Shown here: piece after piece, positions 9,861 to 58,741 of the stretch
Numbering within the stretch: the first letter of the stretch is position 1
Layout of the letters: the number at the start of each line of letters is the position of its first letter
Origin: Phaeosaccion multiseriatum
Taxonomy: Eukaryota; Protista; Ochrophyta, other classes
NCBI GenBank assembly: GCA_965112735.1
Contig: OZ218963.1
Span: 992,001-1,056,000 of the forward strand
DNA: 64,000 bases
Direction of reading: 5' to 3'
Notes under the pieces: generated by a model
What the model was told of the DNA's origin: nothing
Seen by the model: the letters and a program-made list of their open reading frames with translations, nothing else
Databases searched by the model: none
Program-made: the position numbers and the translations under genes

Positions 9861-10545
9861 CGTTCTCCTTCTCCTCCTCGACTCCGCTGTCGTTGTGGGT
9901 GTCGTCGGAGGGGTTGCTGTTGTTGTGTTGTCGCTCGATGCGCGGTGGATTTCCCCGTCGGAATAGGTGTACGAATACACGCTGGGTGTAGAGGGGGTCG
10001 GCGAGTCCGGGCGGTTGATGAGCGGGCGGGTGATGCCGTTAGCGACGTCGGTGTCGGTGTCGTAGGCGAATGTGTAAGCTTGACCCAAGGGTGGTGTTGG
10101 TGCTCGACGGCGCGGGTGCCGGCGGACGCGCTGTGTCAATGCCAAATCGTCCGAGTCGGGGTCTTCGTCGTCACTGGTCGCTTCCAGGCGTCGTTTGTTG
10201 TCCGACTCGATGTTTGTGTTCCGGGTGGTATGTGAGTACCGGTGGTTATCGGTCTCCAGTATCGAGCGGCAGTGGAGGCCGCGTACTCGCGAAAGGCAAT
10301 TAAGCAGTACTTGTCCTGCTCGCTGTGCCTTATTGTTAGCGGAAACGCAGGCGTTGCTTGCACGTTCCGCGTCTGATATGGCCGAGTCGAGGTCCTCGTT
10401 AATGAGGCGGGCTTCGGCGTGATGCGTCTCCTCAGCCGCTTTCTGGTGAGACTCGACTTCAATGATGCGTAACGCTTGTTGGATGGTGGTAACTGTTGCC
10501 GCCAGAGCGTGGGCCTCGCCGTGATAAGGTGTGCCGATCTCAATG
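9804..10545 (-). pseudogene. ORF of about 250 codons (coiled-coil-like N-part, Ser/Thr/Pro-rich C-part) interrupted by a transposon
   Basis: The frame of ORF 9804..10145 stays open upstream (IEIGTPYHGEAHALAATVTTIQQALRIIEVESHQKAAEE...) to the insertion site and for about 9 more codons beyond 13129. No ATG and no recognisable domain. Confidence 0.45.
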
Positions 10546-13123
10546 TCGGCCCCAGACTGGCCTAGACGCCTAGGCCTATTTTTGGCGCAGCCCCCCCGGC
10601 CTAGGCCTATCGACCCTGGACAAGATTACGGTGTGCGCCGGGACCGCAATCAGTAATCAGCCCCAAGCTGGCGCATAATCAGTACTCAGGCCGGCTGATC
10701 ACCCGCTGTAAGCAACCAGGCCGGCTGTCTACGGCTGGTGCCGGTCATAATCAGTAACAAGGCCGGCTGCGACGGCCGTAATCAGTACTCAGATAATCTT
10801 GTCCAGGGTCGACTCCCTCCCTTCCTCCCTTCCTCCCTTCCTCCCTCCCTCCCTCCCTCCCTCCCTCCCTCCCTCCCTCCCTCCCTCCCTCCCTCCCTCC
10901 CTCCCTCCCTCCCTCCCTCCCTCCCTCCCTCCCTCCCTCCCTCCCTCCCTCCCTCCCTCCCTCCCTCCCTCCCTCCCTCCCTCCCTCCCTCCCTCCCTCC
11001 CTCCCTCCCTCCCTCCCTCCCTCCCTCCCTCCCTCCCTCCCTCCCTCCCTCCCTCCCTCCCTCCCTCCCTCCCTCCCTCCCTCCCTCCCTCCCTCCCTCC
11101 CTCCCTCCCTCCCTCCCTCCCTCCCTCCCTCCCTCCCTCCCTCCCTCCCTCCCTCCCTCCCTCCCTCCCTCCCTCCCTCCCTCCCTCCCTCCCTCCCTCC
11201 CTCCCTCCCTCCCTCCCTCCCTCCCTCCCTCCCTCCCTCCCTCCCTCCCTCCCTCCCTCCCTCCCTCCCTCCCTCCCTCCCTCCCTCCCTCCCTCCCTCC
11301 CTCCCTCCCTCCCTCCCTCCCTCCCTCCCTCCCTCTATCCCTCCTCCCTCCCTCCCTCCCTCCCTCCCTCCCCTCCCTCCGCCCTCCCTCCCTCCCTATC
11401 CCTCCCGCCCTCCCTCCCTCCCTCCCTCCCTCCCTCCCTCCCTCCCTCCCTCCCTCCCTCCCTCCCTCCCTCCCTCCCTCCCTCCCTCCCTCCCTCCCTC
11501 CCTCCCTCCCTCCCTCCCTCCCTCCCTCCCTCCCTCCCTCCCTCCCTCCCTCCCTCCCTCCCTCCCTCCCTCCCTCCCTCCCTCCCTCCCTCCCTCCCTC
11601 CCTCCCTCCCTCCCTCCCTCCCTCCCTCCCTCCCTCCCTCCCTCCCTCCCTCCCTCCCTCCCTCCCTCCCTCCCTCCCTCCCTCCCTCCCTCCCTCCCTC
11701 CCTCCCTCCCTCCCTCCCTCCCTCCCTCCCTCCCTCCCTCCCTCCCTCCCTCCCTCCCTCCCTCCCTCCGTCCCTCCCTCGCTCCCTCCCTCCCTCCCTC
11801 CCTCCCTCCCTCCCTCCCTCCCTCCCTCCCTCCCTCCCTCCCTCCCTCCCTCCCTCCCTCCCTCCCTCCCTCCCTCCCTCCCTCTATCCCACTATCCCTC
11901 CGCCCTCCCTCCCTCCCACCCTCCCGCCCTCCCTCCCTCCCTCCCTCCCTCCCTCCCTCCCTCCCTCTCTCCCTCCCTCCTTCCCTCCCTCCCTCCCTCG
12001 CTGCCTCCCTCCCTCCCTCCCTCCCTCCCTCCCTCCCTCCCTCCCTCCCTCCCTCCCTCCCTCCCTCCCTCCCTCCTCGTATCCGTCTATTGTTATTGGG
12101 ATGCCTTATATCGTAACATCTATCCCACTGTCCCTCCCTCCCTCCCTCGCTCCCTCCCTCCCTCCCTCCCTCCGCCCCTCCCTCCGCCCCTCCCTCTATC
12201 CCTCCCTCCCTCCCTCTATCCCGCTATTCCTCCCTGTGGAAAGTCGATTCGTAAGTCAATGGCCCAGGCCCAGGCAGATACGGTGAGAACGAGTGGCGTG
12301 GCTCTCACTATCCTATGTGCGTAGGTGGTCGTTCAGGACTAGCATGCGATAAGTTAATAGAGGCAAGACTGGCTGCTAGGCTGGCTTTGGGGTTGCTGTT
12401 ACCTTGTCCGTGTGTCTAGTTCTATCCTATCTGTAGGCGACAGCGCATGTCGTTTTACACTATCTGTAGGCGACAGCGCTTGTCGTTTTACATCCCTCCC
12501 TACCTCCTTCTATCCCTCTACCCCTCTGTCCCTCCCTTCCTCCCTCCCTCTACACCTCCCACCCTCCCTCCCACCCTCCCTTCCTCCCTCCCTCTCTCCC
12601 TCCCTCCCTCCCTCCCTCCCTCCCTCCCTCCCTCCCTCCCTCCCTCCCTCCCTCCCTCCCTCCCTCCCTCCCTCCCTCCCTCCCTCCCTCCCTCCCTCCC
12701 TCCCTCCCTCCCTCCCTCCCTCCCTCCCTCCCTCCCTCCCTCCCTCCCTCCCTCCCTCCCTCCCTCCCTCCCTCCCTCCCTCCCTCCCTCCCTCCCTCCC
12801 TCCCTCCCTCCCTCCCTCCCTCCCTCCCTCCCTCCCTCCCTCCCTCCCTCCCGCGCTCGCTCCCTCCCTCCCTCCCTCCCTCCCTCCCTCCCTGCCTCGC
12901 TCCCTCCCTCCCTCCCTCCCTCCCTTCGACCCTGGACAAGGTTACGGTGTGCGCCGGCCGTAATCAGTAATCAGCCCCCGGCTGGCGCATAATCAGTAAT
13001 CAGGCCGGCTGCGCCGGCCGTAATCAGTAATCAGATAGGTCGAGGCCTAGGCCTAGAACCGCCGGCCTAGGGAGAAAAAATGGCCGGCCTAGAGCATAGG
13101 CTTCTAGGCCAGTCTGGGGCCGA
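10546..13123 (+). mobile_element. Non-autonomous TIR transposon (outer element), 6-bp TSD TCAATG
   Basis: 27-bp TIRs with 1 mismatch (TCGGCCCCAGACTGGCCTAGA(C/A)GCCTA at 10546-10572 and 13097-13123); TCAATG at 10540-10545 and 13124-13129. Confidence 0.9.
10610..13043 (+). mobile_element. Nested composite element: two direct MITE modules (10610-10812, 12926-13043) flanking (CCCT)n cargo, 6-bp TSD GGCCTA
   Basis: Module 1 has 19-bp TIRs TCGACCCTGGACAAGATTA and internal TAATCAGTAATCAG repeats. Module 2 is a shortened direct copy with an internally deleted right TIR. GGCCTA at 10604-10609 and 13044-13049. Confidence 0.8.
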
Positions 13124-13968
13124 TCAATGGAGGATTCCGAAGTGGATGGTGAGCACTAGTTGTGCTCCTATTCCCCGACGGGGGAGGATAAGCGTGGCAT
13201 GATTGACTGCAAGTTGCGGGCCATGTCATCACAGTGTGGTAGCAGAAGGCGCGTCCACAGAACATGACTCTACGATACGCTCGCTCCCCCTTCCTTCCCT
13301 TCCTGTAGTTCACAGTTGGCTTGGTATTTCCAACAATGGAGTGGAAGGAGAAACAGGGTCCGAGGGGGTGGGATGGGGCGTGGGCGCGTGTGTTGCCCCC
13401 AAGTTAGTACTTCGTAGTACTTCGTAGTACATGGCAGCAGATGGTTTCGGAACGCAGTTGCTCTGCGGCTCGAGCTCAGAAGAGGAAGAGCTCTGCTGTG
13501 CGCACTCCCCTACCGTGATTGAAGGAGATTGAGAGCAGATACAGGGGTGTGTACGAGCAGGGAGGGGAGTAGAGACTGATGGTGTAGGAAAGCTAGGATC
13601 GCAGTTGGGCCAGACTGCTTCCCTTGTGAGGGTGAAGCAAGGTGCTGCTGTGCATACTTGTGTCATGCTAGCTGTTACAAACACAAAAGGTGCCCCGAAT
13701 GCTCTACCGGTTGCAAGGGTTTGCGCTACGCACAAGCATCTGGTAGAAATTTGAGACCCTTGGCCGCGGACTTGCTAGCAAGATTGTGGTCTCGCCTAGA
13801 CTAAGGCTTTTTCTTCCTTTCTCTCGCCGGTGACGTGCCTTCCGCTAGCTCATCGCCCTTTCCTCTCAGTCAGCGTCGTGGGGTCCGTCTACCCTAATCT
13901 CTCCGTCTCCTCCCTTTCATCCCCCGGCCGGCGCATGTAGGAGATTGGCCGTCACGTGTTTGGTCGAC

Positions 13969-14609
13969 ACTCATTAGCTCAATCACTCACTAAGGAATTC
14001 CTCCATAATTGATTCATCCCCGCCTCCCTCTCTTCCTCCCCCTTTCCCTCCTTCCCTCCCTCCCTCCCTCCCTCCCTCCCTCCCTCCCTCCCTCCCTCCC
14101 TCCCTCCCTCCCTCCCTCCCTCCCTCCCTCCCTCCCTCCCTCCCTCCCTCCCTCCCTCCCTCCCTCCCTCCCTCCCTCCTCCCTCCCTCCCTCCCTCCCT
14201 CCCTCCCTCCCTCCCTCCCTCCCTCCCTCCCTCCCTCCCTCCCTCCCTCCCTCCCTCCCTCCCTCCCTCCCTCCCTCCCTCCCTCCCTCCCTCCCTCCCT
14301 CCCTCCCTCCCTCCCTCCCTCCCTCCCTCCCTCCCTCCCTCCCTCCCTCCCTCCCTCCCTCCCTCCCTCCCTCCCTCCCTCCCTCCCTCCCTCCCTCCCT
14401 CCCTCCCTCCCTCCCTCCTTCCCTCCCTGCCCCACTCACTCACTCACTCACTCACTCACTCACTCACTCCCTCACTCACTCACTCACTCACTCACTCACT
14501 CACTCACTCACTCAAATATTGCTGCGAGAAAATTATTGTAGTTCCATCCTATCTGTAGGCGACAGCGCATGTCGTTTTACATGCGCATGTCCTTTTACAG
14601 CATACTGAG
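13969..14609. repeat. (CCCT)n/(ACTC)n tract with a fragment of the composite-element cargo
   Basis: Pure CCCT run at about 14050-14420. CTATCTGTAGGCGACAGCGCATGTCGTTTTACA at about 14549-14581 matches about 12427-12492 and about 51042-51107. Confidence 0.85.
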
Positions 14610-17586
14610 GCCGGTCATCGGCTCGGCACAGCGGGCCCAACTGAGATACTACATTGCCACAACAGCGTCAAGTCGGGCTTCAAATGGGCTCAAAAAGGCC
14701 TAAAGCCCGCATCTGTGGACCACGCACAGCCCGAACGACACGGTTGCTGGCCACAACAAACCCGCGTTGCGCATCGGCTCAGCACAGCGGGCCCAACTGA
14801 GATACTCCATGGCCACAATAGCGTCAAGTCGGGCCTCCGATGGGCCCAAAGTGCCAAACCTGGCTCTTCGCTGGGCTCAAGAGACCCAAAGCCGGCATTT
14901 GTGGGCCAAACGCAGCCCGAACGACGCGACTGCTGGCACAAACCTACCCGTACCGGTCATCGGCTCGGCACATCAGGCCCAACTGAGATACTACATTGCC
15001 ACAACAGCGTCAAGTCGGGCTTCAAATGGGCTCAAAAAGGCCTAAAGCCCGCATCTGTGGACCACGCACAGCCCGAACGACACGGTTGCTGGCCACAACA
15101 AACCCGCGTTGCGCATCGGCTCATCACAGCAGGCCCAACTGAGATACTGCATGGCCACAACAGCGTCAAGTCGGGCCTCCGATGGGCCCAACGTGCCAAA
15201 CCTGGCTCTTCGCTGGGCTCAAGAGACCCAAAGCCGGCATTTGTGGGCAAAACGCAGCCCGAACGACGCGACTGCTGGCACCAACCTACCCGTGCCGGTC
15301 AACAGCTCGGCACAACAGGCCCAACTGAGATACTACATTGCCACAACAGCGTCAAGTCGGGCTTCAAATGGGCTCAAAAAGGCCTAAAGCCCGCATCTGT
15401 GGACCACGCACAGCCCGAACGACACGGTTGCTGGCCACAACAAACACGCGTTGCGCATCGGCTCATCACAGCAGGCCCAACTGAGATACTCCATGGCCAC
15501 AACAGCGTCAAGTCGGGCCTCCGATGGGCCCAAAGTGCCCAACCTGGCTCTTCGCTGGGCTCAAGAGGCCCAAAGCCGGCATTTGTGGGCCAAACGCAGC
15601 CCGAACGACGCGACTGCTGGCACCAACCTACCCGTGCCGTCCTTCGGCTCGGCACAACAGGCCCAACTGAGATACTACATCGCCACAACAGCGTCAAGTC
15701 GGGCTTCAAATGGGCTCAAAAAGGCCTAAAGCCCGCATCTGTGGACCACGCACAGCCCGAACGACACGGTTGCTGGCCACAACAAACCCGCGTTGCGCAT
15801 CGGCTCATCACAGCAGGCCCAACTGAGATACTGCATGGCCACAACAGCGTCAAGTCGGGCCTCCGATGGGCCCAACGTGCCAAACCTGGCTCTTCGCTGG
15901 GCTCAAGAGACCCAAAGCCGGCATTTGTGGGCCAAACGCAGCCCGAACGACGCGACTGCTGGCACAAACCTACCCGTACCGGTCATCGGCTCGGCACATC
16001 AGGCCCAACTGAGATACTACATTGCCACAACAGCGTCAAGTCGGGCTTCAAATGGGCTCAAAAAGGCCTAAAGCCCGCATCTGTGGACCACGCACAGCCC
16101 GAACGACACGGTTGCTGGCCACAACAAACCCGCGTTGCGCATCGGCTCATCACAGCAGGCCCAACTGAGATACTGCATGGCCACAACAGCGTCAAGTCGG
16201 GCCTCCGATGGGCCCAACGTGCCAAACCTGGCTCTTCGCTGGGCTCAAGAGACCCAAAGCCGGCATTTGTGGGCCAAACGCAGCCCGAACGACGCGACTG
16301 CTGGCACAAACCTACCCGTACCGGTCATCGGCTCGGCACATCAGGCCCAACTGAGATACTACATTGCCACAACAGCGTCAAGTCGGGCTTCAAATGGGCT
16401 CAAAAAGGCCTAAAGCCCGCATCTGTGGACCACGCACAGCCCGAACGACACGGTTGCTGGCCACAACAAACCCGCGTTGCGCATCGGCTCATCACAGCAG
16501 GCCCAACTGAGATACTGCATGGCCACAACAGCGTCAAGTCGGGCCTCCGATGGGCCCAACGTGCCAAACCTGGCTCTTCGCTGGGCTCAAGAGACCCAAA
16601 GCCGGCATTTGTGGGCAAAACGCAGCCCGAACGACGCGACTGCTGGCACCAACCTACCCGTGCCGGTCAACAGCTCGGCACAACAGGCCCAACTGAGATA
16701 CTACATCGCCACAACAGCGTCAAGTCGGGCTTCAAATGGGCTCAAAAAGGCCTAAAGCCCGCATCTGTGGACCACGCACAGCCCGAACGACACGGTTGCT
16801 GGCCACAACAAACCCGCGTTGCGCATCGGCTCATCACAGCAGGCCCAACTGAGATACTGCATGGCCACAACAGCGTCAAGTCGGGCCTCCGATGGGCCCA
16901 ACGTGCCAAACCTGGCTCTTCGCTGGGCTCAAGAGACCCAAAGCCGGCATTTGTGGGCCAAACGCAGCCCGAACGACGCGACTGCTGGCACAAACCTACC
17001 CATGCCGTCCATCGGCTCGGCACAACAGGCCCAACTGAGATACTACATCGCCACAACAGCGTCAAGTCGGGCTTCAAATGGGCTCAAAAAGGCCTGAAGC
17101 CCGCATCTGTGGACCACGCACAGCCCGAACGACACGGTTGCTGGCCACAACAAACCCGCGTTGCGCATCGGCTCATCACAGCAGGCCCAACTGAGATACT
17201 GCATGGCCACAACAGCGTCAAGTCGGGCCTCCGATGGGCCCAACGTGCCAAACCTGGCTCTTCGCTGGGCTCAAGAGACCCAAAGCCGGCATTTGTGGGC
17301 AAAACGCAGCCCGAACGACGCGACTGCTGGCACCAACCTACCCGTGCCGGTCATCGGCTCGGCACAACAGGCCCAACTGAGATACTACATTGCCACAACA
17401 GCGTCAAGTCGGGCTTCAAATGGGCTCAAAAAGGCCTAAAGCCCGCATCTGTGGACCACGCACAGCCCGAACGACACGGTTGCTGGCCACAACAAACCCG
17501 CGTTGCGCATCGGCTCAGCACAGCAGGCCCAACTGAGATACTCCATGGCCACAATAGCGTCAAGTCGGGCCTCCGATGGGCCCAAC

Positions 17587-19120
17587 TTGCCGCTCCACAC
17601 GCAAACTCGAGGCGCCAACCACGATCAAAGGGCTCTCCGGTTCCTTCCAACAGCCCGAATAGCTGCCTTCGCATCCATGCTGCCACCTTTGACGCTCGTA
17701 CTATTTGCTTTGCGGTTGCTGTTTGTCCTGAGAGCTGAGCCTCCATCGGACCCCCCCCCTCCCCCTCCCATGCGTTCGAGATGGTGAGGGAGGTACAGCT
17801 GTAGTCCGTCTCCTTCCCTTCGCCGCTCCTCGGCCCGATATGTCTCTCGGATGTAGCTGCCGGAGGTGAGCCGTGCGAGCTCCCGTATCGAAGGTCAGCT
17901 ACGCCCCCACCCATCCAGAGAGACTGCAGGCAAGCTCAGTGGCGACCACGTACGCCTCTTTCTGGCCATACTGCTGTTGTAGGTGGGAGACACTCCAACA
18001 ACAAGGGAGGTACACTTAAACACGCAGACGTACACAAACATTCGCAGGCACACAGATATAGACAAAGGCACAATACAGGGACACCAGCACCCACAAACGC
18101 ACACTAGCACACACAGACGCAGACCAGCACACACAGATACAAACACACATCGTGTGTAGGGGCAGTGACCACGGCTGCTGTTGCCTAGGACTGCCCCGCC
18201 CGCCGTTGAGGGCCGGAATGGCGAGGGATGAGCCGCTGTTGTCACCGCGCGCAGAGCCAGCCTCCTTTGCGGAGGAGGCGCATATTCGCACGCCAAACAC
18301 AGGAAATACGCACCCTACACACAGAAACACCGTCTGGACATACACACACAAACATACAGACAAACACCTGGAAGAGCTAAGGGGCCTGCCGTCACCCGGG
18401 AGCCCCTTTCGTCTCGTAAAAAGACAAAAAATGCCGTGGACCACACCCCCCAAACCTTGGGCCACGGGAGAGAGGAGAGGGCGGAGAGATGAGTAGGGCG
18501 TCGGCCTCAACACCGGACGCGGATCCTACGGCGATACCAGCAAGGAAGAAAGGGCGAAGAGGGCAAAAGGCGCCGGCACTCAACACCGGGGAGGCGGTCG
18601 GCACTCAACACCAGACACCGCTCCTAAGCCGTAGAGCCCCACAACACCGGCAAAGGGAAAGAAAAGAAGAGTTCCGGCACTCAACACCGTGGACACTGTC
18701 GGCACTCAACACCAGACACAGTCTCCCTATCTCTCCTTCCCTCGCCCACGAGGACCCCGGCACTCAACACCAGGCGGGTCCCCTTGGCCGACACAAGCGC
18801 TCTGTCCGGGCCCAGGACAAGAGGCTCGCTTTCCACCACACCAGTATCTACTCTCCTCCTTGACAGTGTGCTCCACTCTTCCTGGGCTCTGTCTCCGCCG
18901 CCTCAGTAAGTGACAGCACACGCCAAGGTCTCTCCTCTTCTGAAAAATCTAAAATCCCTGCTTCACTGACATACTGTACATCTCCCCAGAGGGGACCCCC
19001 CCCCTTGGGGCGGTACCAAGCACCTACGCTGACGCTTCGCCCTGCTGGCTCCCATGTCTCCCACCTCTTCCTCGTCTCTGTTCCGCGAGAAACACAGTTC
19101 CGTTGCTGCGCTGCTGAACA
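17587..19120. repeat. 1534-bp spacer element in satellite, copy 1
   Basis: Near-identical to 26259-27792 and 29118-30651 with identical junctions; mosaic homology to 31655-35566. Confidence 0.9.
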
Positions 19121-22100
19121 GGCTTTTGTGGGCCAAACGCAGCCCGAACGACGCGACTGCTGGCACCAACCTACCCGTGCCGGTCATCGGCTCGGCACAA
19201 CAGGCCCAACTGAGATACTACATTGCCACAACAGCGTCAAGTCGGGCTTCAAATGGGCTCAAAAAGGCCTAAAGCCCGCATCTGTGGACCACGCACAGCC
19301 CGAACGACACGGTTGCTGGCCACAACAAACCCGCGTTGCGCATCGGCTCAGCACAGCAGGCCCAACTGAGATACTCCATGGCCACAATAGCGTCAAGTCG
19401 GGCCTCCGATGGGCCCAACGTGCCAAACCTGGCTCTTCGCTGGGCTCAAGAGGCCCAAAGCCGGCATTTGTGGGCCAAACGCAGCCCGAACGACGCGACT
19501 GCTGGCACAAACCTACCCGTACCGGTCATCGGCTCGGCACATCAGGCCCAACTGAGATACTACATTGCCACAACAGCGTCAAGTCGGGCTTCAAATGGGC
19601 TCAAAAAGGCCTAAAGCCCGCATCTGTGGACCACGCACAGCCCGAACGACACGGTTGCTGGCCACAACAAACCCGCGTTGCGCATCGGCTCATCACAGCA
19701 GGCCCAACTGAGATACTGCATGGCCACAACAGCGTCAAGTCGGGCCTCCGATGGGCCCAACGTGCCAAACCTGGCTCTTCGCTGGGCTCAAGAGACCCAA
19801 AGCCGGCATTTGTGGGCAAAACGCAGCCCGAACGACGCGACTGCTGGCACCAACCTACCCGTGCCGGTCAACAGCTCGGCACAACAGGCCCAACTGAGAT
19901 ACTACATTGCCACAACAGCGTCAAGTCGGGCTTCAAATGGGCTCAAAAAGGCCTAAAGCCCGCATCTGTGGACCACGCACAGCCCGAACGACACGGTTGC
20001 TGGCCACAACAAACCCGCGTTGCGCATCGGCTCATCACAGCAGGCCCAACTGAGATACTCCATGGCCACTACAGCGTCAAGTCGGGCCTCCGATGGGCCC
20101 AAAGTGCCCAACCTGGCTCTTCGCTGGGCTCAAGAGGCCCAAAGCCGGCATTTGTGGGCCAAACGCAGCCCGAACGACGCGACTGCTGGCACCAACCTAC
20201 CCGTGCCGTCCTTCGGCTCGGCACAACAGGCCCAACTGAGATACTACATCGCCACAACAGCGTCAAGTCGGGCTTCAAATGGGCTCAAAAAGGCCTAAAG
20301 CCCGCATCTGTGGACCACGCACAGCCCGAACGACACGGTTGCTGGCCACAACAAACCCGCGTTGCGCATCGGCTCATCACAGCAGGCCCAACTGAGATAC
20401 TGCATGGCCACAACAGCGTCAAGTCGGGCCTCCGATGGGCCCAACGTGCCAAACCTGGCTCTTCGCTGGGCTCAAGAGACCCAAAGCCGGCATTTGTGGG
20501 CCAAACGCAGCCCGAACGACGCGACTGCTGGCACAAACCTACCCGTACCGGTCATCGGCTCGGCACATCAGGCCCAACTGAGATACTACATTGCCACAAC
20601 AGCGTCAAGTCGGGCTTCAAATGGGCTCAAAAAGGCCTAAAGCCCGCATCTGTGGACCACGCACAGCCCGAACGACACGGTTGCTGGCCACAACAAACCC
20701 GCGTTGCGCATCGGCTCATCACAGCAGGCCCAACTGAGATACTGCATGGCCACAACAGCGTCAAGTCGGGCCTCCGATGGGCCCAACGTGCCAAACCTGG
20801 CTCTTCGCTGGGCTCAAGAGACCCAAAGCCGGCATTTGTGGGCCAAACGCAGCCCGAACGACGCGACTGCTGGCACAAACCTACCCGTACCGGTCATCGG
20901 CTCGGCACATCAGGCCCAACTGAGATACTACATTGCCACAACAGCGTCAAGTCGGGCTTCAAATGGGCTCAAAAAGGCCTAAAGCCCGCATCTGTGGACC
21001 ACGCACAGCCCGAACGACACGGTTGCTGGCCACAACAAACCCGCGTTGCGCATCGGCTCATCACAGCAGGCCCAACTGAGATACTGCATGGCCACAACAG
21101 CGTCAAGTCGGGCCTCCGATGGGCCCAACGTGCCAAACCTGGCTCTTCGCTGGGCTCAAGAGACCCAAAGCCGGCATTTGTGGGCCAAACGCAGCCCGAA
21201 CGACGCGACTGCTGGCACAAACCTACCCATGCCGTCCATCGGCTCGGCACAATAGGCCCAACTGAGATACTACATCGCCACAACAGCGTCAAGTCGGGCT
21301 TCAAATGGGCTCAAAAAGGCCTGAAGCCCGCATCTGTGGACCACGCACAGCCCGAACGACACGGTTGCTGGCCACAACAAACCCGCGTTGCGCATCGGCT
21401 CATCACAGCAGGCCCAACTGAGATACTGCATGGCCACAACAGCGTCAAGTCGGGCCTCCGATGGGCCCAACGTGCCAAACCTGGCTCTTCGCTGGGCTCA
21501 AGAGACCCAAAGCCGGCATTTGTGGGCCAAACGCAGCCCGAACGACGCGACTGCTGGCACCAACCTACCCGTGCCGGTCATCGGCTCGGCACAACAGGCC
21601 CAACTGAGATACTACATTGCCACAACAGCGTCAAGTCGGGCTTCAAATGGGCTCAAAAAGGCCTAAAGCCCGCATCTGTGGACCACGCACAGCCCGAACG
21701 ACACGGTTGCTGGCCACAACAAACCCGCGTTGCGCATCGGCTCAGCACAGCAGGCCCAACTGAGATACTCCATGGCCACAATAGCGTCAAGTCGGGCCTC
21801 CGATGGGCCCAACGTGCCAAACCTGGCTCTTCGCTGGGCTCAAGAGGCCCAAAGCCGGCATTTGTGGGCCAAACGCAGCCCGAACGACGCGACTGCTGGC
21901 ACAAACCTACCCGTACCGGTCATCGGCTCGGCACATCAGGCCCAACTGAGATACTACATTGCCACAACAGCGTCAAGTCGGGCTTCAAATGGGCTCAAAA
22001 AGGCCTAAAGCCCGCATCTGTGGACCACGCACAGCCCGAACGACACGGTTGCTGGCCACAACAAACCCGCGTTGCGCATCGGCTCATCACAGCAGGCCCA

Positions 22101-25100
22101 ACTGAGATACTGCATGGCCACAACAGCGTCAAGTCGGGCCTCCGATGGGCCCAACGTGCCAAACCTGGCTCTTCGCTGGGCTCAAGAGACCCAAAGCCGG
22201 CATTTGTGGGCAAAACGCAGCCCGAACGACGCGACTGCTGGCACCAACCTACCCGTGCCGGTCAACAGCTCGGCACAACAGGCCCAACTGAGATACTACA
22301 TTGCCACAACAGCGTCAAGTCGGGCTTCAAATGGGCTCAAAAAGGCCTAAAGCCCGCATCTGTGGACCACGCACAGCCCGAACGACACGGTTGCTGGCCA
22401 CAACAAACCCGCGTTGCGCATCGGCTCATCACAGCAGGCCCAACTGAGATACTCCATGGCCACAACAGCGTCAAGTCGGGCCTCCGATGGGCCCAAAGTG
22501 CCCAACCTGGCTCTTCGCTGGGCTCAAGAGGCCCAAAGCCGGCATTTGTGGGCCAAACGCAGCCCGAACGACGCGACTGCTGGCACCAACCTACCCGTGC
22601 CGTCCTTCGGCTCGGCACAACAGGCCCAACTGAGATACTACATCGCCACAACAGCGTCAAGTCGGGCTTCAAATGGGCTCAAAAAGGCCTAAAGCCCGCA
22701 TCTGTGGACCACGCACAGCCCGAACGACACGGTTGCTGGCCACAACAAACCCGCGTTGCGCATCGGCTCATCACAGCAGGCCCAACTGAGATACTGCATG
22801 GCCACAACAGCGTCAAGTCGGGCCTCCGATGGGCCCAACGTGCCAAACCTGGCTCTTCGCTGGGCTCAAGAGACCCAAAGCCGGCATTTGTGGGCCAAAC
22901 GCAGCCCGAACGACGCGACTGCTGGCACAAACCTACCCGTACCGGTCATCGGCTCGGCACATCAGGCCCAACTGAGATACTACATTGCCACAACAGCGTC
23001 AAGTCGGGCTTCAAATGGGCTCAAAAGGCCTAAAGCCCGCATCTGTGGACCACGCACAGCCCGAACGACACGGTTGCTGGCCACAACAAACCCGCGTTGC
23101 GCATCGGCTCATCACAGCAGGCCCAACTGAGATACTGCATGGCCACAACAGCGTCAAGTCGGGCCTCCGATGGGCCCAACGTGCCAAACCTGGCTCTTCG
23201 CTGGGCTCAAGAGACCCAAAGCCGGCATTTGTGGGCCAAACGCAGCCCGAACGACGCGACTGCTGGCACAAACCTACCCGTACCGGTCATCGGCTCGGCA
23301 CATCAGGCCCAACTGAGATACTACATTGCCACAACAGCGTCAAGTCGGGCTTCAAATGGGCTCAAAAAGGCCTAAAGCCCGCATCTGTGGACCACGCACA
23401 GCCCGAACGACACGGTTGCTGGCCACAACAAACCCGCGTTGCGCATCGGCTCATCACAGCAGGCCCAACTGAGATACTGCATGGCCACAACAGCGTCAAG
23501 TCGGGCCTCCGATGGGCCCAACGTGCCAAACCTGGCTCTTCGCTGGGCTCAAGAGACCCAAAGCCGGCATTTGTGGGCAAAACGCAGCCCGAACGACGCG
23601 ACTGCTGGCACCAACCTACCCGTGCCGGTCAACAGCTCGGCACAACAGGCCCAACTGAGATACTACATTGCCACAACAGCGTCAAGTCGGGCTTCAAATG
23701 GGCTCAAAAAGGCCTAAAGCCCGCATCTGTGGACCACGCACAGCCCGAACGACACGGTTGCTGGCCACAACAAACCCGCGTTGCGCATCGGCTCATCACA
23801 GCAGGCCCAACTGAGATACTCCATGGCCACAACAGCGTCAAGTCGGGCCTCCGATGGGCCCAAAGTGCCCAACCTGGCTCTTCGCTGGGCTCAAGAGGCC
23901 CAAAGCCGGCATTTGTGGGCCAAACGCAGCCCGAACGACGCGACTGCTGGCACCAACCTACCCGTGCCGTCCTTCGGCTCGGCACAACAGGCCCAACTGA
24001 GATACTACATCGCCACAACAGCGTCAAGTCGGGCTTCAAATGGGCTCAAAAAGGCCTAAAGCCCGCATCTGTGGACCACGCACAGCCCGAACGACACGGT
24101 TGCTGGCCACAACAAACCCGCGTTGCGCATCGGCTCATCACAGCAGGCCCAACTGAGATACTGCATGGCCACAACAGCGTCAAGTCGGGCCTCCGATGGG
24201 CCCAACGTGCCAAACCTGGCTCTTCGCTGGGCTCAAGAGACCCAAAGCCGGCATTTGTGGGCCAAACGCAGCCCGAACGACGCGACTGCTGGCACAAACC
24301 TACCCGTACCGGTCATCGGCTCGGCACATCAGGCCCAACTGAGATACTACATTGCCACAACAGCGTCAAGTCGGGCTTCAAATGGGCTCAAAAAGGCCTA
24401 AAGCCCGCATCTGTGGACCACGCACAGCCCGAACGACACGGTTGCTGGCCACAACAAACCCGCGTTGCGCATCGGCTCATCACAGCAGGCCCAACTGAGA
24501 TACTGCATGGCCACAACAGCGTCAAGTCGGGCCTCCGATGGGCCCAACGTGCCAAACCTGGCTCTTCGCTGGGCTCAAGAGACCCAAAGCCGGCATTTGT
24601 GGGCCAAACGCAGCCCGAACGACGCGACTGCTGGCACAAACCTACCCGTACCGGTCATCGGCTCGGCACATCAGGCCCAACTGAGATACTACATTGCCAC
24701 AACAGCGTCAAGTCGGGCTTCAAATGGGCTCAAAAAGGCCTAAAGCCCGCATCTGTGGACCACGCACAGCCCGAACGACACGGTTGCTGGCCACAACAAA
24801 CCCGCGTTGCGCATCGGCTCATCACAGCAGGCCCAACTGAGATACTGCATGGCCACAACAGCGTCAAGTCGGGCCTCCGATGGGCCCAACGTGCCAAACC
24901 TGGCTCTTCGCTGGGCTCAAGAGACCCAAAGCCGGCATTTGTGGGCAAAACGCAGCCCGAACGACGCGACTGCTGGCACCAACCTACCCGTGCCGGTCAA
25001 CAGCTCGGCACAACAGGCCCAACTGAGATACTACATCGCCACAACAGCGTCAAGTCGGGCTTCAAATGGGCTCAAAAAGGCCTAAAGCCCGCATCTGTGG

Positions 25101-48100: not shown

Positions 48101-49333
48101 AGGGAGGGAAGGAAGGAAGGAGGGAGGGAGGGCGAGACAGAGGGATTGGGAGATAGAAGGAGGTAGGGAGGGAGGAAGTGAGGGGGGGTTGGGGGAGAGG
48201 GAGGGAGGGAGGGATGGACGGAGGTAAGGAGGGAGGTTGGAGGGAGGGAGGGACAGAGGGATAGAGGGATAGAATGAGGTAGGGAGGGAGGGAGGGACAG
48301 AGGGAGGGTGGAAGGGTAGTGGGAGGATGGGAGGGAGGGAGGGAGGGAGGGAGGGAGGGAAGGAGGGATGTAGGGAGGGAGGGAGGGACAGAGGGATAGA
48401 GGGATAGAATGAGGTAGGGAGGGAGGGAGGGGCGGAGGGAGGGTGGAAGGGGTGGAGGGAGGATGGGAGGGAGGGATAGAGGGGTAGAGGTATGGAAGGA
48501 GGAACGGATAGGGGGATATAGGGAGGGAGAGCGGGAGGGAGGGAGGGAGGGAGGGAGGGAGGGAGGGGAGGGAGGGAGGGAGGGAGGGAGGGAGGGAGGG
48601 AGGGAGGGAGGGATAGAAAGAGGGAGGGAGGGTGGGACAGAGGGATTGAGGGATAATAGGAGGTAGGGATAGCGGTACAAAGGGAAGGAGCGGGAGAGGG
48701 AGAAAGGGATAGAAAGAGGGAGGAAGGGAGAAGGTGAGGGAGAGAGGGACAGAGGGAGGAAGAAAAACAGAGAGGTAGGGAGGGAGGGAGGGAGGGTGGG
48801 AGGGAGAGAGGGAGGGAGGGAGAGAGGGAGGGAGGGAGGGAGGGAGGAGGGGAATGGAGGGAGGGAGAGAGGAACGGAGGGAGGGAGGGAGGGAGGGAGG
48901 GAGGGAGGGAGGGAGGAGGGGAATGGAGGGAGGGAGAGAGGAACGGAGGGAGGGAGGGAGGGAGGGAGGAAGGGAAGGACGGAAGGAAGGAAGGAGGGGG
49001 GGAGGGAGGGAAGGACGGAAGCAAGGGAGGGAGGGAGGGAGGGAGGGAAGGAGGGAGGGAGGGAGGGAGGGAGGGAGGGAGGGAGGGAGGGAGGGAGGGA
49101 GGGAGGGAGGGAGGGAGGGAGGGAGGGAGGGAGGGAGGGAGGGAGGGAGGGAGGGAGGGAGGGAGGGAGGGAGGGAGGGAGGGAGGGAGGGAGGGAGGGA
49201 GGGAGGGAGGGAGGGAGGGAGGGAGGGAGGGAAGGAGGGAAGGAGGGAAGGAGGGAAGGAGGGAAGGAGGAAGGGAGGGAGGGAGGGAGGGAGGGAGGGA
49301 GGGAGGGAGGGAGGGAGGGAGGGAGGGAGGGAG
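42107..49333. repeat. 7.2-kb polypurine (GGGA)n complex repeat with duplicated variant modules
   Basis: Pure GGGA runs alternate with recurrent units, e.g. GGTCGGGATAGCGGTATAAAGGTAAGGAGCGGCAGAGGG at about 42400, 43263, 44003, 44680, 45976 and 46761. Confidence 0.95.
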
Positions 49334-49499
49334 CCGACCCTGGACAAGATTATCTGATTACAGGTCCCTGACATGCTTCTGAGAGAGGCCAGCCCAGAAG
49401 CAGGAAGCAGGCCGACTGGCGTCGGCCAGAATCAGGAAGCAGGGTCGCCTCAGAAGCATGTCAGGGGCCGACTAGGCTTCTAGGCCAGTCTGGAGGCGA
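49334..49499 (-). mobile_element. Left end of an inverted, internally deleted copy of the nested element
   Basis: 49472-49499 is a degenerate outer TIR and 49334-49361 is the end of module 1 (CGACCCTGGACAAGATTATCTGATTAC), both on the minus strand, leading into the GGGA tract. Confidence 0.7.
49361..49471 (-). mobile_element. 111-bp MITE, inverted diverged copy of 58532-58642
   Basis: TIR CCCTGACATGCTTCTGAG / CTCAGAAGCATGTCAGGGGCCGA; left tip mutated; no TSD. Confidence 0.8.
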
Positions 49500-49703: not shown

Positions 49704-51637
49704 TCGGCCCCAGACTGGCCTAGAAGCCTAGGCCTAGAGTCGAAATTTGGCCGGCTTAGGGGGGCCGCAGGCCCCCGGCCTAGGCCTATTTTTGGCGCAG
49801 CCCCCCCGGCCTAGGCCTATTGACCCTGGACAAGATTACGGTGTGCGCCGGGACCGCAATCAGTAATCAGCCCTCAGCTGGAGCATAATCAGTACTAAGG
49901 CCGGCTGGTCACTGGCTGTAAGCAACCAGGCCGGCTGGCACCGGTCATAATCAGTAATCAGGCCGGCTGCGCCGGCCGTAATCAGTAATCAGATAGTCTT
50001 GTCCAGGGTCGACTCCCTCCCTCTCTCCCTCCCTTCCTCCCTCCCTCCCTCCCTCCCTCCCCCCCTCCCTCCCTTCCTCCCTCCCTCCCTCCTTCCCTCC
50101 CTCCCTCCCTTCCTCCCTCCCTCCTTCCCTCCCTCCCTCCCTCCCTCCCTCCCTCCCTCCCTCCCTCCCTCCCTCCCTCCCTCCCTCCCTCCCTCCCTCC
50201 CTCCCTCCCTCCCTCCGTCCCTCCCTCCCTCCCTCCCTCCCTCCCTCCCTCCCTCCCTCCCTCCCTCCCTCCCTCCCTCCCTCCCTCCCTCCCTCCCTCC
50301 CTCCCTCCCTCCCTCCCTCCCTCCCTCCCTCCCTCCCTCCCTCCCTCCCTCCCTCCCTCCCTCCCTCCCTCCCTCCCTCCCTCCCTCCCTCCCTCCCTCC
50401 CTCCCTCCCTCCCTCCCTCCCTCCCTCCCTCCCTCCCTCCCTCCCTCCCTCCCTCCCTCCCTCCCTCCCTCCCTCCCTCCCTCCCTCCCTCCCTCCCTCC
50501 CTCCCTCCCTCCCTCCCTCCCTCCCTCCCTCCCTCCCTCCCTCCCTCCCTCCCTCCCTCTCTCCCTCCCTCCCTCCCTCCCTCCCTCCCTCCCTCTATCC
50601 CGCTATCCCTCCGCCCTCCCTACCTCCTCGTATCCGTCTATTGTTATTGGGATGCCTTACATCGTAACATCTATCCCACTGTCCCTCCCTCCCTCCCTCC
50701 CTCCCTCCCTCCCTCCCTCCCTCCCTCCCTCCCTCCCTCCCTCCCTCCCTCCCTCCCTCCCTCCCTCCCTCCCTCTCTCCTTCCCTCCGCCCCTCCCTCC
50801 GCCCCTCCCTCCATCCCTCCCTCCCTCCCTCTATCCCGCTATTCCTCCCTGTGGAAAGTCGATTCGTAAGTCATTGGCCCAGGCCCAGGCAGATACGGTG
50901 AGAACGAGTGGCGTGGCTCTCACTATCCTATGTGCGTAGGTGGTCGTTTAGGACTAGAATGCGATATGTTAATAGAGGCAAGACTGGCTGCTAGGCTGGC
51001 TTTGGGGTTGCTGTTACCTCGTGTGTATGTCTAGTTCTATCCTATCTGTAGGCGACAGCTTACGTCGTTTTATACTATCTGTAGGAGACAGCGCTTGTCG
51101 TTTTACATCCCTCCCTACCTCCTTCTATCCCTCTACCCCTCTGTCCCTCGCTTCCTCCCTCCCTCCCTCCCACCCTCCCTCTACACCTCCCACCCTCCCT
51201 CCCTCCCTCCCTCCCTCCCTCCCTCCCTCCCTCCCTCCCTCCCTCCCTCCCTCCCTCCCTCCCTCCCTCCCTCCCTCCCTCCCTCCCTCCCTCCCTCCCT
51301 CCCTCCCTCCCTCCCTCCCTCCCTCCCTCCCTCCCTCCCTCCCTCCCTCCCTCCCTCCCTCCCTCTCTCCCTCCCTCCCTCCCTCCCTCCCTGCCTCCCT
51401 CCCTCCCTTCGACCCTGGACAAGGTTACGGTGTGCGCCGGCCGTAATCAGTAATCAGCCCCCGGCTGGCGCATAATCAGTAATCAGGCCGGGGAATGGAG
51501 GTAATCAGCAACCAGGCCGGCTGGCGCCATAATCAGTAATCAGGCCGGCTGCGCCGGCCGTAATCAGTAATCAGATAGGTCGAGGCCTAGGCCTAGAACC
51601 GCCGGCCTAGGGAGAAAAAATGGCCGGCCTAGAGCAT
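49704..51637 (+). mobile_element. Second copy of the nested TIR/composite element, right outer TIR missing
   Basis: Left TIR at 49704; modules at 49820-50012 and 51409-51583 flanked by GGCCTA; same cargo islands as 12075-12500 with shorter CCCT runs. Confidence 0.88.
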
Positions 51638-51675
51638 TAAAGCATAGGGGGGATTAGGTGGATTAGGTGCTACCA

Positions 51676-51985
51676 TCGACCCCTGACACGCTATCGCTCA
51701 CATTCTCGATAGCGCGCTATCGCGCCCCGGCGGGCCCGATAGCGCGCTATCGGCCGCCGGCCAATAGCGGATAGCGTGCCGGCTGGCGCCGGCCGATAGC
51801 GGATAGCGTGCCGGCTGGCGCCGGCCGATAGCGGATAGCGCGCCGGCTGGCGTCAGCTCTCCCCCCCCCCCCCCCCGGTGCGGTAGCAGCTGACGCTGGC
51901 GATAGCGGATAGCGCGCCGGAGATAGCGGATAGCGTGCCGGCTGGCGCCGGCGATAGCGTTAGCGGATAGCGTGTCAGGGGTCGA
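51676..51985. mobile_element. 310-bp MITE, 20-bp TIR, 6-bp TSD CTACCA
   Basis: TCGACCCCTGACACGCTATC ... GATAGCGTGTCAGGGGTCGA; CTACCA at 51670-51675 and 51986-51991; many internal GATAGCG motifs. Confidence 0.92.
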
Positions 51986-52320
51986 CTACCAAAGCAAATC
52001 GAACACCCCTAATAAAGTAATTCGATCGATATTTGTATCGACCCTCGCCTCAAATTTTTTCAACACAATCTCCGACCGGACCCCCACCACGCCAAAAGGG
52101 GAGAAAGAGAATCGAAGACATCATCGAGAGAGACAGCAATAAAGAGCGGAAGGGGGGGAGAGAGTGAGGCATACACATACAGAGATATAGGAGACAAAAG
52201 GACGAACAGACTACTAGGATCCAGCGAGCAGCGAAGGCTTCTGTGCTTTTTTGAGCTCCGTCGAGACGCGCGGGAGCTCCGCGGACCCTCTGGGGGGGGG
52301 GGCTGGTAGCCCCAACAGGA

Positions 52321-53523
52321 ATGGCCAGACGTCTCAAGAAGGTGCGCGCGAAAATTGCAGTGGTCTACCTCCCTCGCTCTCTCGCTCTCTCCCTCTCTCC
52401 CCCCCTTCTTCCCCCGCGTCTCTCTCTCTCGCTATAAAAACATCTCCCCCCCCTCCCCTTTCTCACGCCATGGTGCCTGTAGGAAGAGGACTTTCTTTCC
52501 TCCATATGTACTCACTCGTTTCGCTTCAGGTTTTGGTAGACCAGCGGGGGCTTGTCTAACGTTATCATGGCGGAACTAGTGTGGAGACAGGGAGATGTGG
52601 AAGGCTCTTAACCCGGGTTCCGATGGCATCTTTCCCTACTCAGGAACTGGGGGAGCTGCAAAACAATCCTCTGGAGTTCTGTACAGTGTCACCGGTGGAT
52701 GATGACATTATGCATTGGGGCGCTATGATGATAGGGCCGGAGGACTCCCCATATAAAGTAAGTTGGGAGGAGGGAGGAGCAGGTGCTTAGTATACACGAA
52801 TCTGCCGAGCTAGCACACATTACTTGCTCGTATACACTACAGAGTTGGGTTCCATGAAGGTCTCTGTGCCCATGTGTGTCCCAACACCTCGAAGAGACTT
52901 GATGCCGAGGTTTGGGTCAGGGTGAAGGGTAAGGAGCTTAGATGCTTTCCCCCCCGTATCAACCAAGACTTTGAGCCAAACCTCCTCCATACTGCCGTGC
53001 TGCCGCAGACCTTGCGAGTTGCGTCCCTATCACCTGACGCCGTTTCGCCACTGCTCTGTTTCCCCACTCCTCGTCTCCTGGCCCAACCCACACGGTATGG
53101 CGTCCACCTTGAAACACCAGGGTGGAGTATTCGATGTGGACTTGGTCTTTCCACAAGAGTACCCGTTCAAAGCACCAAAAGTAAAGTTTTTGACACGCAT
53201 CTACCACCCCAACGTCAAGAGTGACACAGGGGAGATCTGCTCGGATGTAATTAACGACAATTGGGGCCCGACGCTTAACGTCACTTATGTGCTCTCCACG
53301 ATTCGGCAGGTGAGTTGTGAGCTGCGGGGCGGGGGGGGGGCGGGGGCCGGAGGAAGAGCGCCCAGGCAGACTGTCCTGACTCGAGACTGGAATTGTCTAC
53401 TGCTGGTTCTTCCTTGAGACGTCTTGCTGATTCTCTCTGTCTCTCTCTCTCTGTCTCTCTCCCTCTCTCTCTCTCCCTCTGTCTCTCTCTCACTCTCTCT
53501 CTGTCTCTCTCTCTCTGTCTCTC

Positions 53524-53568
<45 letters not shown>

Positions 53569-53849
53569 GTCTCTCTCTCTCTCTCTGTCTCTCTCTCTGT
53601 CTCTCTCTCTGTCTCTCTCTCTGTCTCTCTCTGTCTCTCTCTCTCACTCTCTCTCTGCCTCTCTCTCTCTGCCTCTCTCTCTCTGTCTCTCTCTCTCTCT
53701 CTCTCTGTCTCTCTCCCTGTCTCTCTCTCTCTGTCTCTCTCTCTCTTTCTCTCTGTCTCTCTCTCACTCTCTCTGTCTCCCTCTCTCTCTCTCTCTCGCT
53801 CTGTCTCTCTCTCTCTGTCTCTCTCTCTGTCTCTCTCTCTCTGTCTCTC

Positions 53850-53897
<48 letters not shown>

Positions 53898-53927
53898 TCT
53901 TTCTCTCTCACTCTCTCTCTGTCTCTC

Positions 53928-53967
<40 letters not shown>

Positions 53968-54071
53968 CCTGTCTCTCTCTCTGTCTCTCTCTGTCTCTCT
54001 CTGTCTCTCTCTCTCTCTGTCTCTCTCTCACTCTCTCTCTGTCTCCCTCTCTCTCTCTCTCTCTCGCTCTG

Positions 54072-54103
<32 letters not shown>

Positions 54104-54246
54104 TGTCTCTGACTTGCTTGCCTCAGCTGCTGAGCGAACCTCACGCGGACCAGCCACTGGAGGCGGAAATTGCACGGGAGCTGGCAGATAATAAAGAGAA
54201 ATTCAACGAGACGGCCGCAAAGTGGACGCAGCAATATGCGGCATGA
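52321..54246 (+). CDS. Ubiquitin-conjugating enzyme E2 (Ubc4/UBE2D-like, 147 aa); exons 52321-52341, 52644-52757, 53121-53309, 54127-54246
   Basis: MARRLKKEL, W.A...GPEDSPYKGGVF, FP.EYPFK.PKVKF.TRIYHPNV, GEIC (catalytic Cys), LL.EP..D.PL..EIA and W.QQYA; all introns are GT-AG, phase 0. Confidence 0.93.
53432..54110. repeat. (CT)n/(CTGT) microsatellite inside E2 intron 3
   Basis: About 680 bp of interrupted CT dinucleotide between donor 53310 and acceptor 54126. Confidence 0.95.
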
Positions 54247-54526: not shown

Positions 54527-54945
54527 TCGGCTCCAGAACACACCTAGCTAGGCCTCTTTTGGACAATTGAGAATTGTTCGGCCTAGAGAGGGCTGCGGAC
54601 CGTTGGCCTTGACGAAGGTTGCCGAGGGTCCGAGGGGGGGAATTTGCCCCTCAGCTGGCCCGGAGCCCACCCGGTGTCTCTCTCTCGTGTTGAAGTCGGC
54701 TTATTTCGCGTTGTCTCTTGCACTCCTTGCCTGTCCTGCGAGGAGTGTCAGCCTACCGGCCGGTGTGCTGCCATTGGTGGCCCCAGGCACACTCGCGCGC
54801 TCGCGACGAGGTGGCATAGAGGCGGCCTACAAGCGCCCAACAAGCGGCCAACGAGCGGCCAACGAGCGGCCTGCGGCCTAGGGCTGGGAGCGACCTGGGG
54901 CGGCCGGAGGTCACCGGTTTAGTACGAAGGCCGAGCGGCCTACAA
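54527..54945 (-). mobile_element. Degenerate inverted relative of the 58021-58515 MITE
   Basis: The reverse complement shares AAGAGACAACRCGAA, GCAGCACACC...GTAGGC..CACTCC, CAGCCCTAGGC and GGCCTAG motifs; ends are eroded. Confidence 0.5.
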
Positions 54946-57625: not shown

Positions 57626-58020
57626 TTCGCCCAGGGAAGGGAGTGGAACTCTGTCTCCGTCAAGGCCCCTGCTGGATGAACCAAGCTTTGCTCCCCCTCC
57701 CTCTACACCCCTCCACTCCCGCCCCGACTTCCTTGACCGTTTCTGTCCTCCTCGCCACTCTTCCACCTACCACCGCCAGCTCTTCTCGCTTCAGGGTAAA
57801 GGTTTATCGAACACAAATCGCAACCATTTATCACTGCAGCACGACCACACTCCTCCTACCCGGGGCGCGATTTAGGCTCAATTCAAACAGGTAGCGAGTC
57901 GGTACCACATTCCCCTTTCTCTTTTTTTTTCAAACACTTGTCCACACACACCAACGGTATTTATTGAAGCGCGCAAGGTGGTTCTTCGGCCTGTGATACG
58001 TCCCTTTTGTTACTTTTAAA

Positions 58021-58515
58021 TCGCCCCCGTGCACGCCTAGCGGCCTCGGCTCTAGGCCGCTAGGCCGCTCGGCCTTCGGCCGAAATAGGCCTAGGCCGGC
58101 GGCCTCCGTCCGCTCTAGGCCGCTCACTTTTCAGCCCTAGGCGGCCTATAGCCCGCCTCTAGGCAGCCTCCCAGTGACCGTGGGCGCGTGCGTGGTTCGT
58201 GGTGCCGCCCAGCCAGTGGGTAGCAGCACACCTGTAGGCCTGCACTCCCCGTAGGACCAGCGAGGCGGAAAGAGACAACACGAACCAAGTCTAGCTACTC
58301 CTCACTTATCCCATGCAATACATTTGCTTAAAACTGACGACACTTGGTCGGGTTCCGGGCCAGCCCAAGGGCACATGAGCATATTCCCGCCCTGGACCTG
58401 CGCCTAGTTGGCGTCTGCCCTAGGCGGCCTATAAATAGGCCGAGGGCCTACGGCCCTCGCTAGGCCGGGCAATTTTCCAAAATAGGCCTAGGCCGCTAGG
58501 CGTGCACGGGGGCGA
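58021..58515. mobile_element. 495-bp MITE, 26-bp TIR, 6-bp TSD TTTAAA
   Basis: TCGCCCCCGTGCACGCCTAGCGGCCT ... AGGCCGCTAGGCGTGCACGGGGGCGA; TTTAAA at 58015-58020 and 58516-58521; subterminal CTAGGCC motifs. Confidence 0.9.
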
Positions 58516-58531
58516 TTTAAAGGACTTGAAA

Positions 58532-58642
58532 TCGGCCCCTGACATGCTTCTGAGGCGACCCTGCTTCCTGCTTCTGGCCGGCGCCAGCCGGCCTGCTTCC
58601 TGCTTCTGGGCTGGCCTGTCTCAGAAGCATGTCAGGGGCCGA
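58532..58642. mobile_element. 111-bp MITE, 23-bp perfect TIR, 6-bp TSD TTGAAA
   Basis: TCGGCCCCTGACATGCTTCTGAG and its reverse complement; TTGAAA at 58526-58531 and 58643-58648. Confidence 0.92.
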
Positions 58643-58741
58643 TTGAAAACCAAACCGTAGATGGCACTTAAGGGTGTAATAGACCTGGACGTCCCTTTGC
58701 TTCCCTCGGAGGAGACTGACTTCAAATTTAAGTAAGACATG

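Follow-up and report, generated by a model that had tools for sequence, protein, structure and literature searches.

Gene-less inverted-repeat elements with TCGNCCC ends and 6-bp target duplications: a probable series of five transposon families in a stramenopile alga

The 64,000-nucleotide stretch of Phaeosaccion multiseriatum contig OZ218963.1 analysed here (positions 992,001 to 1,056,000, hereafter the window, in whose own numbering all coordinates are given) very probably contains five related families of gene-less DNA transposons, resembling MITEs (miniature transposable elements with inverted repeats), that reside in a stramenopile alga's nuclear genome and are moved in trans. Five elements each start with TCG-N-CCC, each finish with the reverse complement of that pattern, and each are bounded by an exact 6-bp direct repeat. 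The coordinate pairs, 6-bp repeats and TCGNCCC termini that a first-pass annotation had given for them were all re-read exactly as claimed. Where a DNA transposon has no gene, its classification relies mainly on how long the target duplication is and on which bases stand at its termini, and the combination of TCGNCCC with 6 bp matches no group compared here, in a lineage for which few mobile elements have been catalogued. The elements are as follows:

10546-13123, plus strand: E1, with the target duplication TCAATG at 10540-10545 and 13124-13129
10546-10609 (left) and 13050-13123 (right), plus strand: the arms of E1, an intact copy that hosts the nested E2 composite
10610-13043, plus strand: E2 composite, nested in E1, with GGCCTA flanks at 10604-10609 and 13044-13049
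51676-51985, plus strand: E3, 310 bp, with the target duplication CTACCA at 51670-51675 and 51986-51991
58021-58515, plus strand: E4, 495 bp, with the target duplication TTTAAA at 58015-58020 and 58516-58521
58532-58642, plus strand: E5a, 111 bp, with the target duplication TTGAAA at 58526-58531 and 58643-58648

Sizes range from 111 to 495 bp, E1 being reduced to arms of 64 and 74 bp once its insert is set aside. No notable open reading frame (ORF) lies within the elements, and E4 has none longer than 65 codons. The terminal inverted repeats are perfect over 21 bp in E1, 20 bp in E3, 26 bp in E4 and 23 bp in E5a, and not one of the five target duplications extends to 7 or 8 bp. The elements look recently inserted.

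Could such structures arise by chance in a repeat-rich region? Taken alone, TCGNCCCC is not enriched in the window (17 occurrences against 16.96 expected); the signal sits in the pairing of the ends. Among 653 pairs of the form TCGNCC...GGNCGA lying no more than 15 kb apart, a flank match at all six positions is found only in the five claimed pairs, four of which also have ends matching at 20 of 20 positions. The same elements emerge from a scan that is blind to the motif, in which perfect inverted-repeat pairs of at least 14 bp and up to 6 kb apart were collected, low-complexity seeds were left out and nine boundary offsets were allowed. Only E1, E3, E4 and E5a, of 91 such pairs, have a flanking repeat of 5 bp or longer; in these four the duplication is always 6 bp and the boundary always falls at the T of TCG, and the number of such flanking repeats expected by chance in the 91-pair scan is estimated at about 0.2. 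It may be argued that no mobile elements are present and that the inverted repeats arose by chance, by recombination or through errors of assembly, given that microsatellites, satellites and local duplications dominate the region and that the three copies of E1/E2 (see below) are clearly linked by local duplication. However, four independent perfect inverted-repeat pairs that share one terminal pattern and carry different exact 6-bp flanks, against the roughly 0.2 expected, together with the position of two of these four elements in ordinary non-array DNA beside genes, bring that explanation close to refutation.

Several candidates were rejected on the way to this set. Copies of TCGNCCCC that lie in genes or inside the (TCAC)n array do not mark the ends of elements. 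Boundaries shifted so as to give a 3-bp or 8-bp duplication leave flanks that are no longer direct repeats. The pair at 32108-32329, which starts with TCGCCC and has ends matching at 20 of 20 positions, lies inside a palindrome with 138-bp arms that extends beyond the motif, shows no duplication and is not a member. The palindrome itself (32068-32369) is near perfect, with two 138-bp arms that are 99% complementary and 26 bp between them, and yields mirror-image ORFs on both strands. The number of copies per family in the window differs: E5 has two independent copies, those of E1/E2 are partly local duplicates, and E3 and E4 are single. No paralogous empty site was found when each flank was searched separately in the window.

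The ends have a two-part organization. A gap-free alignment of 15 ends from the five families reveals eight invariant positions among the first fifteen (T1, C2, G3, C5, C6, C7, C12 and G15, each in 15/15 ends). The outer part, about 13 bp beginning with TCG-N-CCC, is similar across all five families, while directly inside it, at both ends and in every family, lies a 7-8-mer that is specific to the family: GGCCTAG-type in E1 and E4, TAATCAG in E2, GATAGCG in E3 and GAAGCAG in E5 (CTGCTTC on the other strand). The same family 7-8-mer recurs through the interior as doublets, which in E2, E3 and E5 alternate with an identical GC-rich spacer to form a unit of 31-32 bp; thus the interior of E3 is made of 32-bp units with GATAGCG doublets, that of E5a has CTGCTTC doublets, and that of the complete E2 copy has TAATCAG doublets in a single orientation. 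E4 has motifs of the GGCCTAG/CTAGGCG type, and the regions just inside its ends are about 80% similar to the arms of E1.

That each family has its own reiterated motif, as the first-pass annotation proposed, is borne out by the counts, the motifs being nearly exclusive to the elements: all 26 window occurrences of TAATCAG and 31 of 34 of GGCCTAG fall within them, as do 14 of 15 occurrences of the spacer core GCCGGCTG. The further description of these motifs as subterminal holds in part, since they do lie near the ends but occupy the interior as well, in tandem and in one direction. E2, E3 and E5 keep the spacer while the doublet differs, which shows that the families diverged through replacement of the motif across the whole array. 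Whatever their class, the five families, with a common outer end, an inner motif of their own and a common spacer, offer an unusually clear natural series of how end specificity diversifies. A short run of GAGCGGCC-type repeats at 54820-54945, with GGCCTAG nearby and no recognised ends, may represent decayed sequence akin to the motif set of E1 and E4.

The nested unit inside E1 is more complex than first described. It had been taken as one element with a deleted right terminal repeat; an internal deletion in a right repeat is indeed present, but 10610-13043 is not a single element. It consists of two copies of one small element (E2A and E2B) placed around a (CTCC)n array:

10610-10812, plus strand: E2A, complete, 203 bp, ends matching at 19 of 20 positions
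10813-12925, plus strand: cargo, composed of (CTCC)n, then a 266-bp unique piece (12230-12495) that includes a 33-bp repeat, then (TCCC)n
12926-13043, plus strand: E2B, 118 bp, left end intact, right inverted repeat with one internal deletion

E2A and E2B share CTCCCT as inner flank and GGCCTA as outer flank. Such an arrangement is that of a composite, and it shows that E2A, cargo and E2B moved into E1 jointly, with one 6-bp duplication. Two E2 copies residing in a (CTCC)n array, perhaps both derived from one insertion into it, transposed by means of their outermost ends and brought the array along into E1. Furthermore, the copy at 10546 holds the insert and has its own TCAATG duplication, showing that E1 moved after gaining the composite, as a 2.6-kb unit carrying it. 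The arrangement resembles that of composite transposons and of macrotransposons of the Ac/Ds type, in which the outer ends of two copies likewise carry the DNA between them and leave a single duplication; it differs in its cargo, a microsatellite that includes one short unique piece, and the event is here reconstructed from structure. In the composite a route becomes visible along which a microsatellite can be captured, copied and afterwards expanded to kilobases, which bears on the origin of the large arrays of this region. At 14023-14582, a (CCTC)n array is followed by part of the same 33-bp repeat that occurs in the cargo, and this segment may be a remnant of the cargo or a source for it.

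Three structures can be added to those of the first-pass annotation, namely two damaged copies of the nested E1/E2 and a second copy of E5:

49704-51637, plus strand: second nested E1/E2 copy, with the outer right end of E1 lost
49704-49819, plus strand: its left E1 arm
49820-50012, plus strand: E2A' of the second copy
50013-51408, plus strand: cargo of the second copy
51409-51583, plus strand: E2B' of the second copy
51590-51637, plus strand: its partial right E1 arm
49814-49819 and 51584-51589, plus strand: GGCCTA of the second copy
42108-49499, minus strand: third nested copy, inverted and truncated, made of array, E2A end and E1 arm fragment
42108-49333, minus strand: (GGAG)n array, 7.2 kb, the reverse complement of the composite's (CTCC)n
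49334-49361, minus strand: E2A-type end fragment, 28 bp, adjoining the (GGAG)n array
49366-49471, minus strand: E5b, 96% identical to E5a, one end intact and the other 5 bp short
49472-49499, minus strand: E1 left-arm fragment, 28 bp, inverted, terminus mutated

The second nested copy has the same GGCCTA and CTCCCT junctions as the first, and its cargo is about 90% identical. The (GGAG)n array is read as the expanded cargo of this inverted and truncated third copy. E5b, in which one doublet reads as a hybrid of the E2 and E5 motifs, keeps no target duplication and is inserted within an E1 arm, between the 28-bp fragments. It begins exactly at its own TCG, and at that point the other two E1 arms continue uninterrupted, which serves as a one-sided occupied-site test of the element boundary. 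Two ends of the damaged copies depart from the terminal TCG: one E2A-type end has TTG (49820-49822) and another has CCG (49334-49336). The TTG terminus corresponds to a C-to-T change at CpG, a pattern often tied to cytosine methylation. Two left arms of E1 (49472-49499 and 49704-49819) stand head to head with 204 bp between them, and from these arms the (GGAG)n and (CTCC)n arrays point outward in inverted orientation, a layout that suggests a rearrangement involving element ends.

How would the elements move? Most likely, a DDE-type transposase encoded elsewhere in the genome moves them in trans. Because the duplications are exact and 6 bp long, we infer that the enzyme cuts its target with a 6-bp stagger and joins the element ends to it, and that repair of the gaps leaves the duplication. 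The outer stretch of about 13 bp would be the part recognised at the cleavage step, and the family 7-8-mer would be a sequence-specific binding site that assigns each family to the transposase variant that moves it. From the two-part organization it seems that related variants of the transposase, each recognising its own motif, would keep the families apart. As to the choice of target, three of the five duplications begin with T and four of five end with A, which hints at a weak base preference, five sites being too few to say more. The insertions of E4 and E5a, into TTTAAA and TTGAAA, are 16 bp apart. This spot (58015-58648) is AT-rich and lies about 100 bp past the stop-codon end of a TRAF-zinc-finger ORF (58742-60814, minus strand), which probably puts both elements within or close to the 3' untranslated region of that ORF.

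Several observations weigh against the interpretation as transposon families. The interior doublets are all in one orientation, with no mirroring at the two ends, and the interior is therefore a tandem array and not two mirrored sets of sites; a one-way array of this kind is as compatible with a tandem minisatellite as with a set of binding sites. Cut-and-paste chemistry, a DDE enzyme and a role of the motifs in binding are what we infer from the structures, and the independent target sites number only five. Finally, no relatives outside the window were found in IMG/VR and the JGI metagenomes. The common E3/E5 end gave nine single matches in IMG/VR, about chance level, and the paired E5 pattern gave none in the JGI metagenomes; an E5 20-mer had one match, which resembles protein-coding sequence; the E1 and E4 ends had none; and the single match of the E2 end is to an AT-rich viral contig without repeat structure.

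Which enzyme is the partner of these families? The statement that the window encodes no transposase stands: a domain scan of 150 stop-to-stop ORFs of at least 83 codons in its non-array DNA yielded host domains only, and no transposase, integrase or related domain was detected in these or in 20 ORFs scanned singly. The elements are non-autonomous, and the window does not fix the superfamily of the partner enzyme.

An integrase-type DDE transposase (retroviral-integrase-like, or of the kind found in IS3EU/GingerRoot) is a possible but tentative candidate for the partner, and would place the elements in a known superfamily as divergent non-autonomous members. Duplications of 6 bp characterise IS3EU/GingerRoot and Polinton and are within the span of 4-6 bp known for retroviral-type integrases (PMC10045372, PMC6839031). 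IS3EU/GingerRoot elements also have non-autonomous derivatives, and their ends are TA..TA or TG..CA (PMC10045372, PMC6839031), with the same outermost T...A as the ends here. However, the second base is C in the present elements, neither A nor G, and TC..GA is found in 15/15 ends. The IS3EU ends, TAYGG..CCRTA in rust fungi (PMC12730594), are unlike TCGNCCC..GGGNCGA, and IS3EU/GingerRoot inverted repeats exceed 30 bp, or reach 100-150 bp in GingerRoot, compared with 19-26 bp here. Moreover, the window ORFs contain no integrase domain, and the Ectocarpus listing has no IS3EU family (PMC12477816, Table 1). Polinton/Maverick elements share the 6-bp target duplication but are large and self-synthesising, with long inverted repeats and genes for a polymerase and an integrase; their ends are of the AG type, and those of Ginger2 are TG..CA (PMC6839031). 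With TCG termini, repeats of 19-26 bp and no such domains in the window, the present elements have nothing of the Polinton organization. The earlier expectation that groups with 6-bp duplications have other terminal bases agrees with the reported ends of IS3EU and Polinton. The 8-bp duplication of KDZ/Zisupton is not found, every duplication here being 6 bp and none extending to 7 or 8 bp.

Elements of the hAT type typically have short inverted repeats, carry short motifs that recur close to their ends, prefer T and A in their targets and show a terminal pattern with A as the second and G as the fifth base. The first two features are seen in the present elements, and duplications that start with T in three of five cases and end with A in four of five would mirror the target preference, but the usual A at position 2 is absent from ends that read TCGNC. 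A stramenopile hAT transposase that makes 6-bp instead of 8-bp duplications is, on the whole, an unlikely partner. In its favour, the ends of Ectocarpus hAT-1 and hAT-N1, as given in the part of the curated library compared, are TTGGC..GCCAA and differ by one base from the TCGGC..GCCGA of E1 and E5 (PMC12477816); the inverted repeats are of similar length (23 bp in Ectocarpus, about 20 bp here), and the TTGGC end of hAT-1 itself departs from the classical hAT pattern (PMC12477816, supplement 3). Duplications of 6 bp are off the usual 8-bp rule of hAT elements and yet consistent with hAT6, one of the groups on record with 5-, 6- and 7-bp duplications (hAT5, hAT6 and hAT7; PMC12730594). Against this, the hAT families in that part of the Ectocarpus library make 8-bp duplications (PMC12477816, supplement 3), the likeness to them concerns the first five bases only, and no hAT domain occurs in the window ORFs.

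A Dada-type transposase would account for the length of the duplications, which are 6 or 7 bp in that superfamily (PMC8869645), and one Dada family is curated in Ectocarpus, where it represents the only listed superfamily with duplications of 6-7 bp (PMC12477816, Table 1). However, Dada elements target multicopy genes for small RNAs, namely tRNA, snRNA or 5S genes (PMC8869645), whereas the five targets here are unrelated sequences and the window has neither a tRNA gene nor an Rfam match, which makes a Dada partner very improbable. The PIF/Harbinger MITEs of Ectocarpus present another partial likeness, since those compared have GC-rich ends with a 5' C-run (GACCC..GGGTC and GGCCC-type), and the ends described here, read without the outer TC/GA, become GACCC, GGCCC or GCCCC. 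PIF/Harbinger elements make a 3-bp TwA/TnA duplication, in contrast to the 6 bp found outside TC/GA, and no repeated triplet stands beside GACCC or GGCCC in the elements. Harbinger-N4 of Ectocarpus was considered as a relative and rejected, the similarity to its compared sequence stopping at GACCC.

Alternatively, the partner may belong to a group not yet classified, an ochrophyte DDE superfamily whose families would separate by swapping a 7-8-bp binding motif beside a conserved cleavage-proximal stretch, with the remainder of the repeat unit retained. Duplications of 6 bp together with TC..GA ends are unlike the groups whose ends were compared (PMC10045372, PMC6839031, PMC12730594), and no curated Ectocarpus family matches within the part of the library compared, which has no family with a 6-bp duplication and no consensus starting with TCGNCCC termini (PMC12477816, supplement 3). 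The lack of DNA relatives in IMG/VR or the JGI metagenomes points the same way, as does a poorly sampled host lineage, in which a 690-residue ORF of the window has no homologue at E <=1e-5. Absence of a match is nevertheless weak evidence, the DNA searches having covered viral and metagenome collections, and most unusual MITEs join known superfamilies once their long copies are seen; we consider an unclassified group somewhat doubtful. A partner from a known superfamily is quite possible, because the outermost T...A is integrase-like and the Ectocarpus hAT end is one base away. Such probability as is left after integrase-type, hAT and unclassified partners goes to other known groups. If long copies did show a new or strongly divergent transposase group, the repeat libraries of stramenopile algae would need a new entry.

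The DNA around the elements is that of a eukaryotic genome. Outside the arrays, the window has genes for a tubulin-tyrosine ligase (TTL), TMEM231, an E2 ubiquitin-conjugating enzyme and GDT1, as well as two TRAF-zinc-finger ORFs, and has no tRNA genes or Rfam families. The exons of the ligase gene were searched separately:

38359-39435 and 39563-40195, minus strand: tubulin-tyrosine-ligase family gene, two ORFs

The best matches of the ligase ORF are brown algal, with 63% identity to Ectocarpus and 60% to Choristocarpus over the domain, well short of a 100% match. An exact look-up of ten ORF products in the protein collection gave no entry. By such sequence comparisons, the host is placed among the eukaryotes as a poorly sampled stramenopile near brown algae, and the DNA is not human.

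Much of the window is made of repeats. A 342-bp satellite and a 1.6-kb unit are among them, as are microsatellite arrays of extreme strand composition, with values of GC skew close to -0.9 and +0.93:

5-8705: (TCAC)n array, 8.7 kb
42108-49333: (GGAG)n array, 7.2 kb, listed above with the third nested copy
53432-54110: TC-rich array, 0.7 kb
14610-31654 and 35567-36947: 342-bp satellite, with sub-units of 156 and 186 bp
17500-19100, 26172-27772 and 29031-30631: 1.6-kb unit, three copies at least 99.75% identical

The 1.6-kb unit interrupts the 342-bp satellite and has a partial copy at 34684-35248; its ORFs of 162 and 165 codons have no Pfam match. At about 9760-9853, a hairpin-like inverted repeat of 94 bp, with arms of about 30 bp and palindromic CTAG at its edges, may represent another miniature element of a different family.

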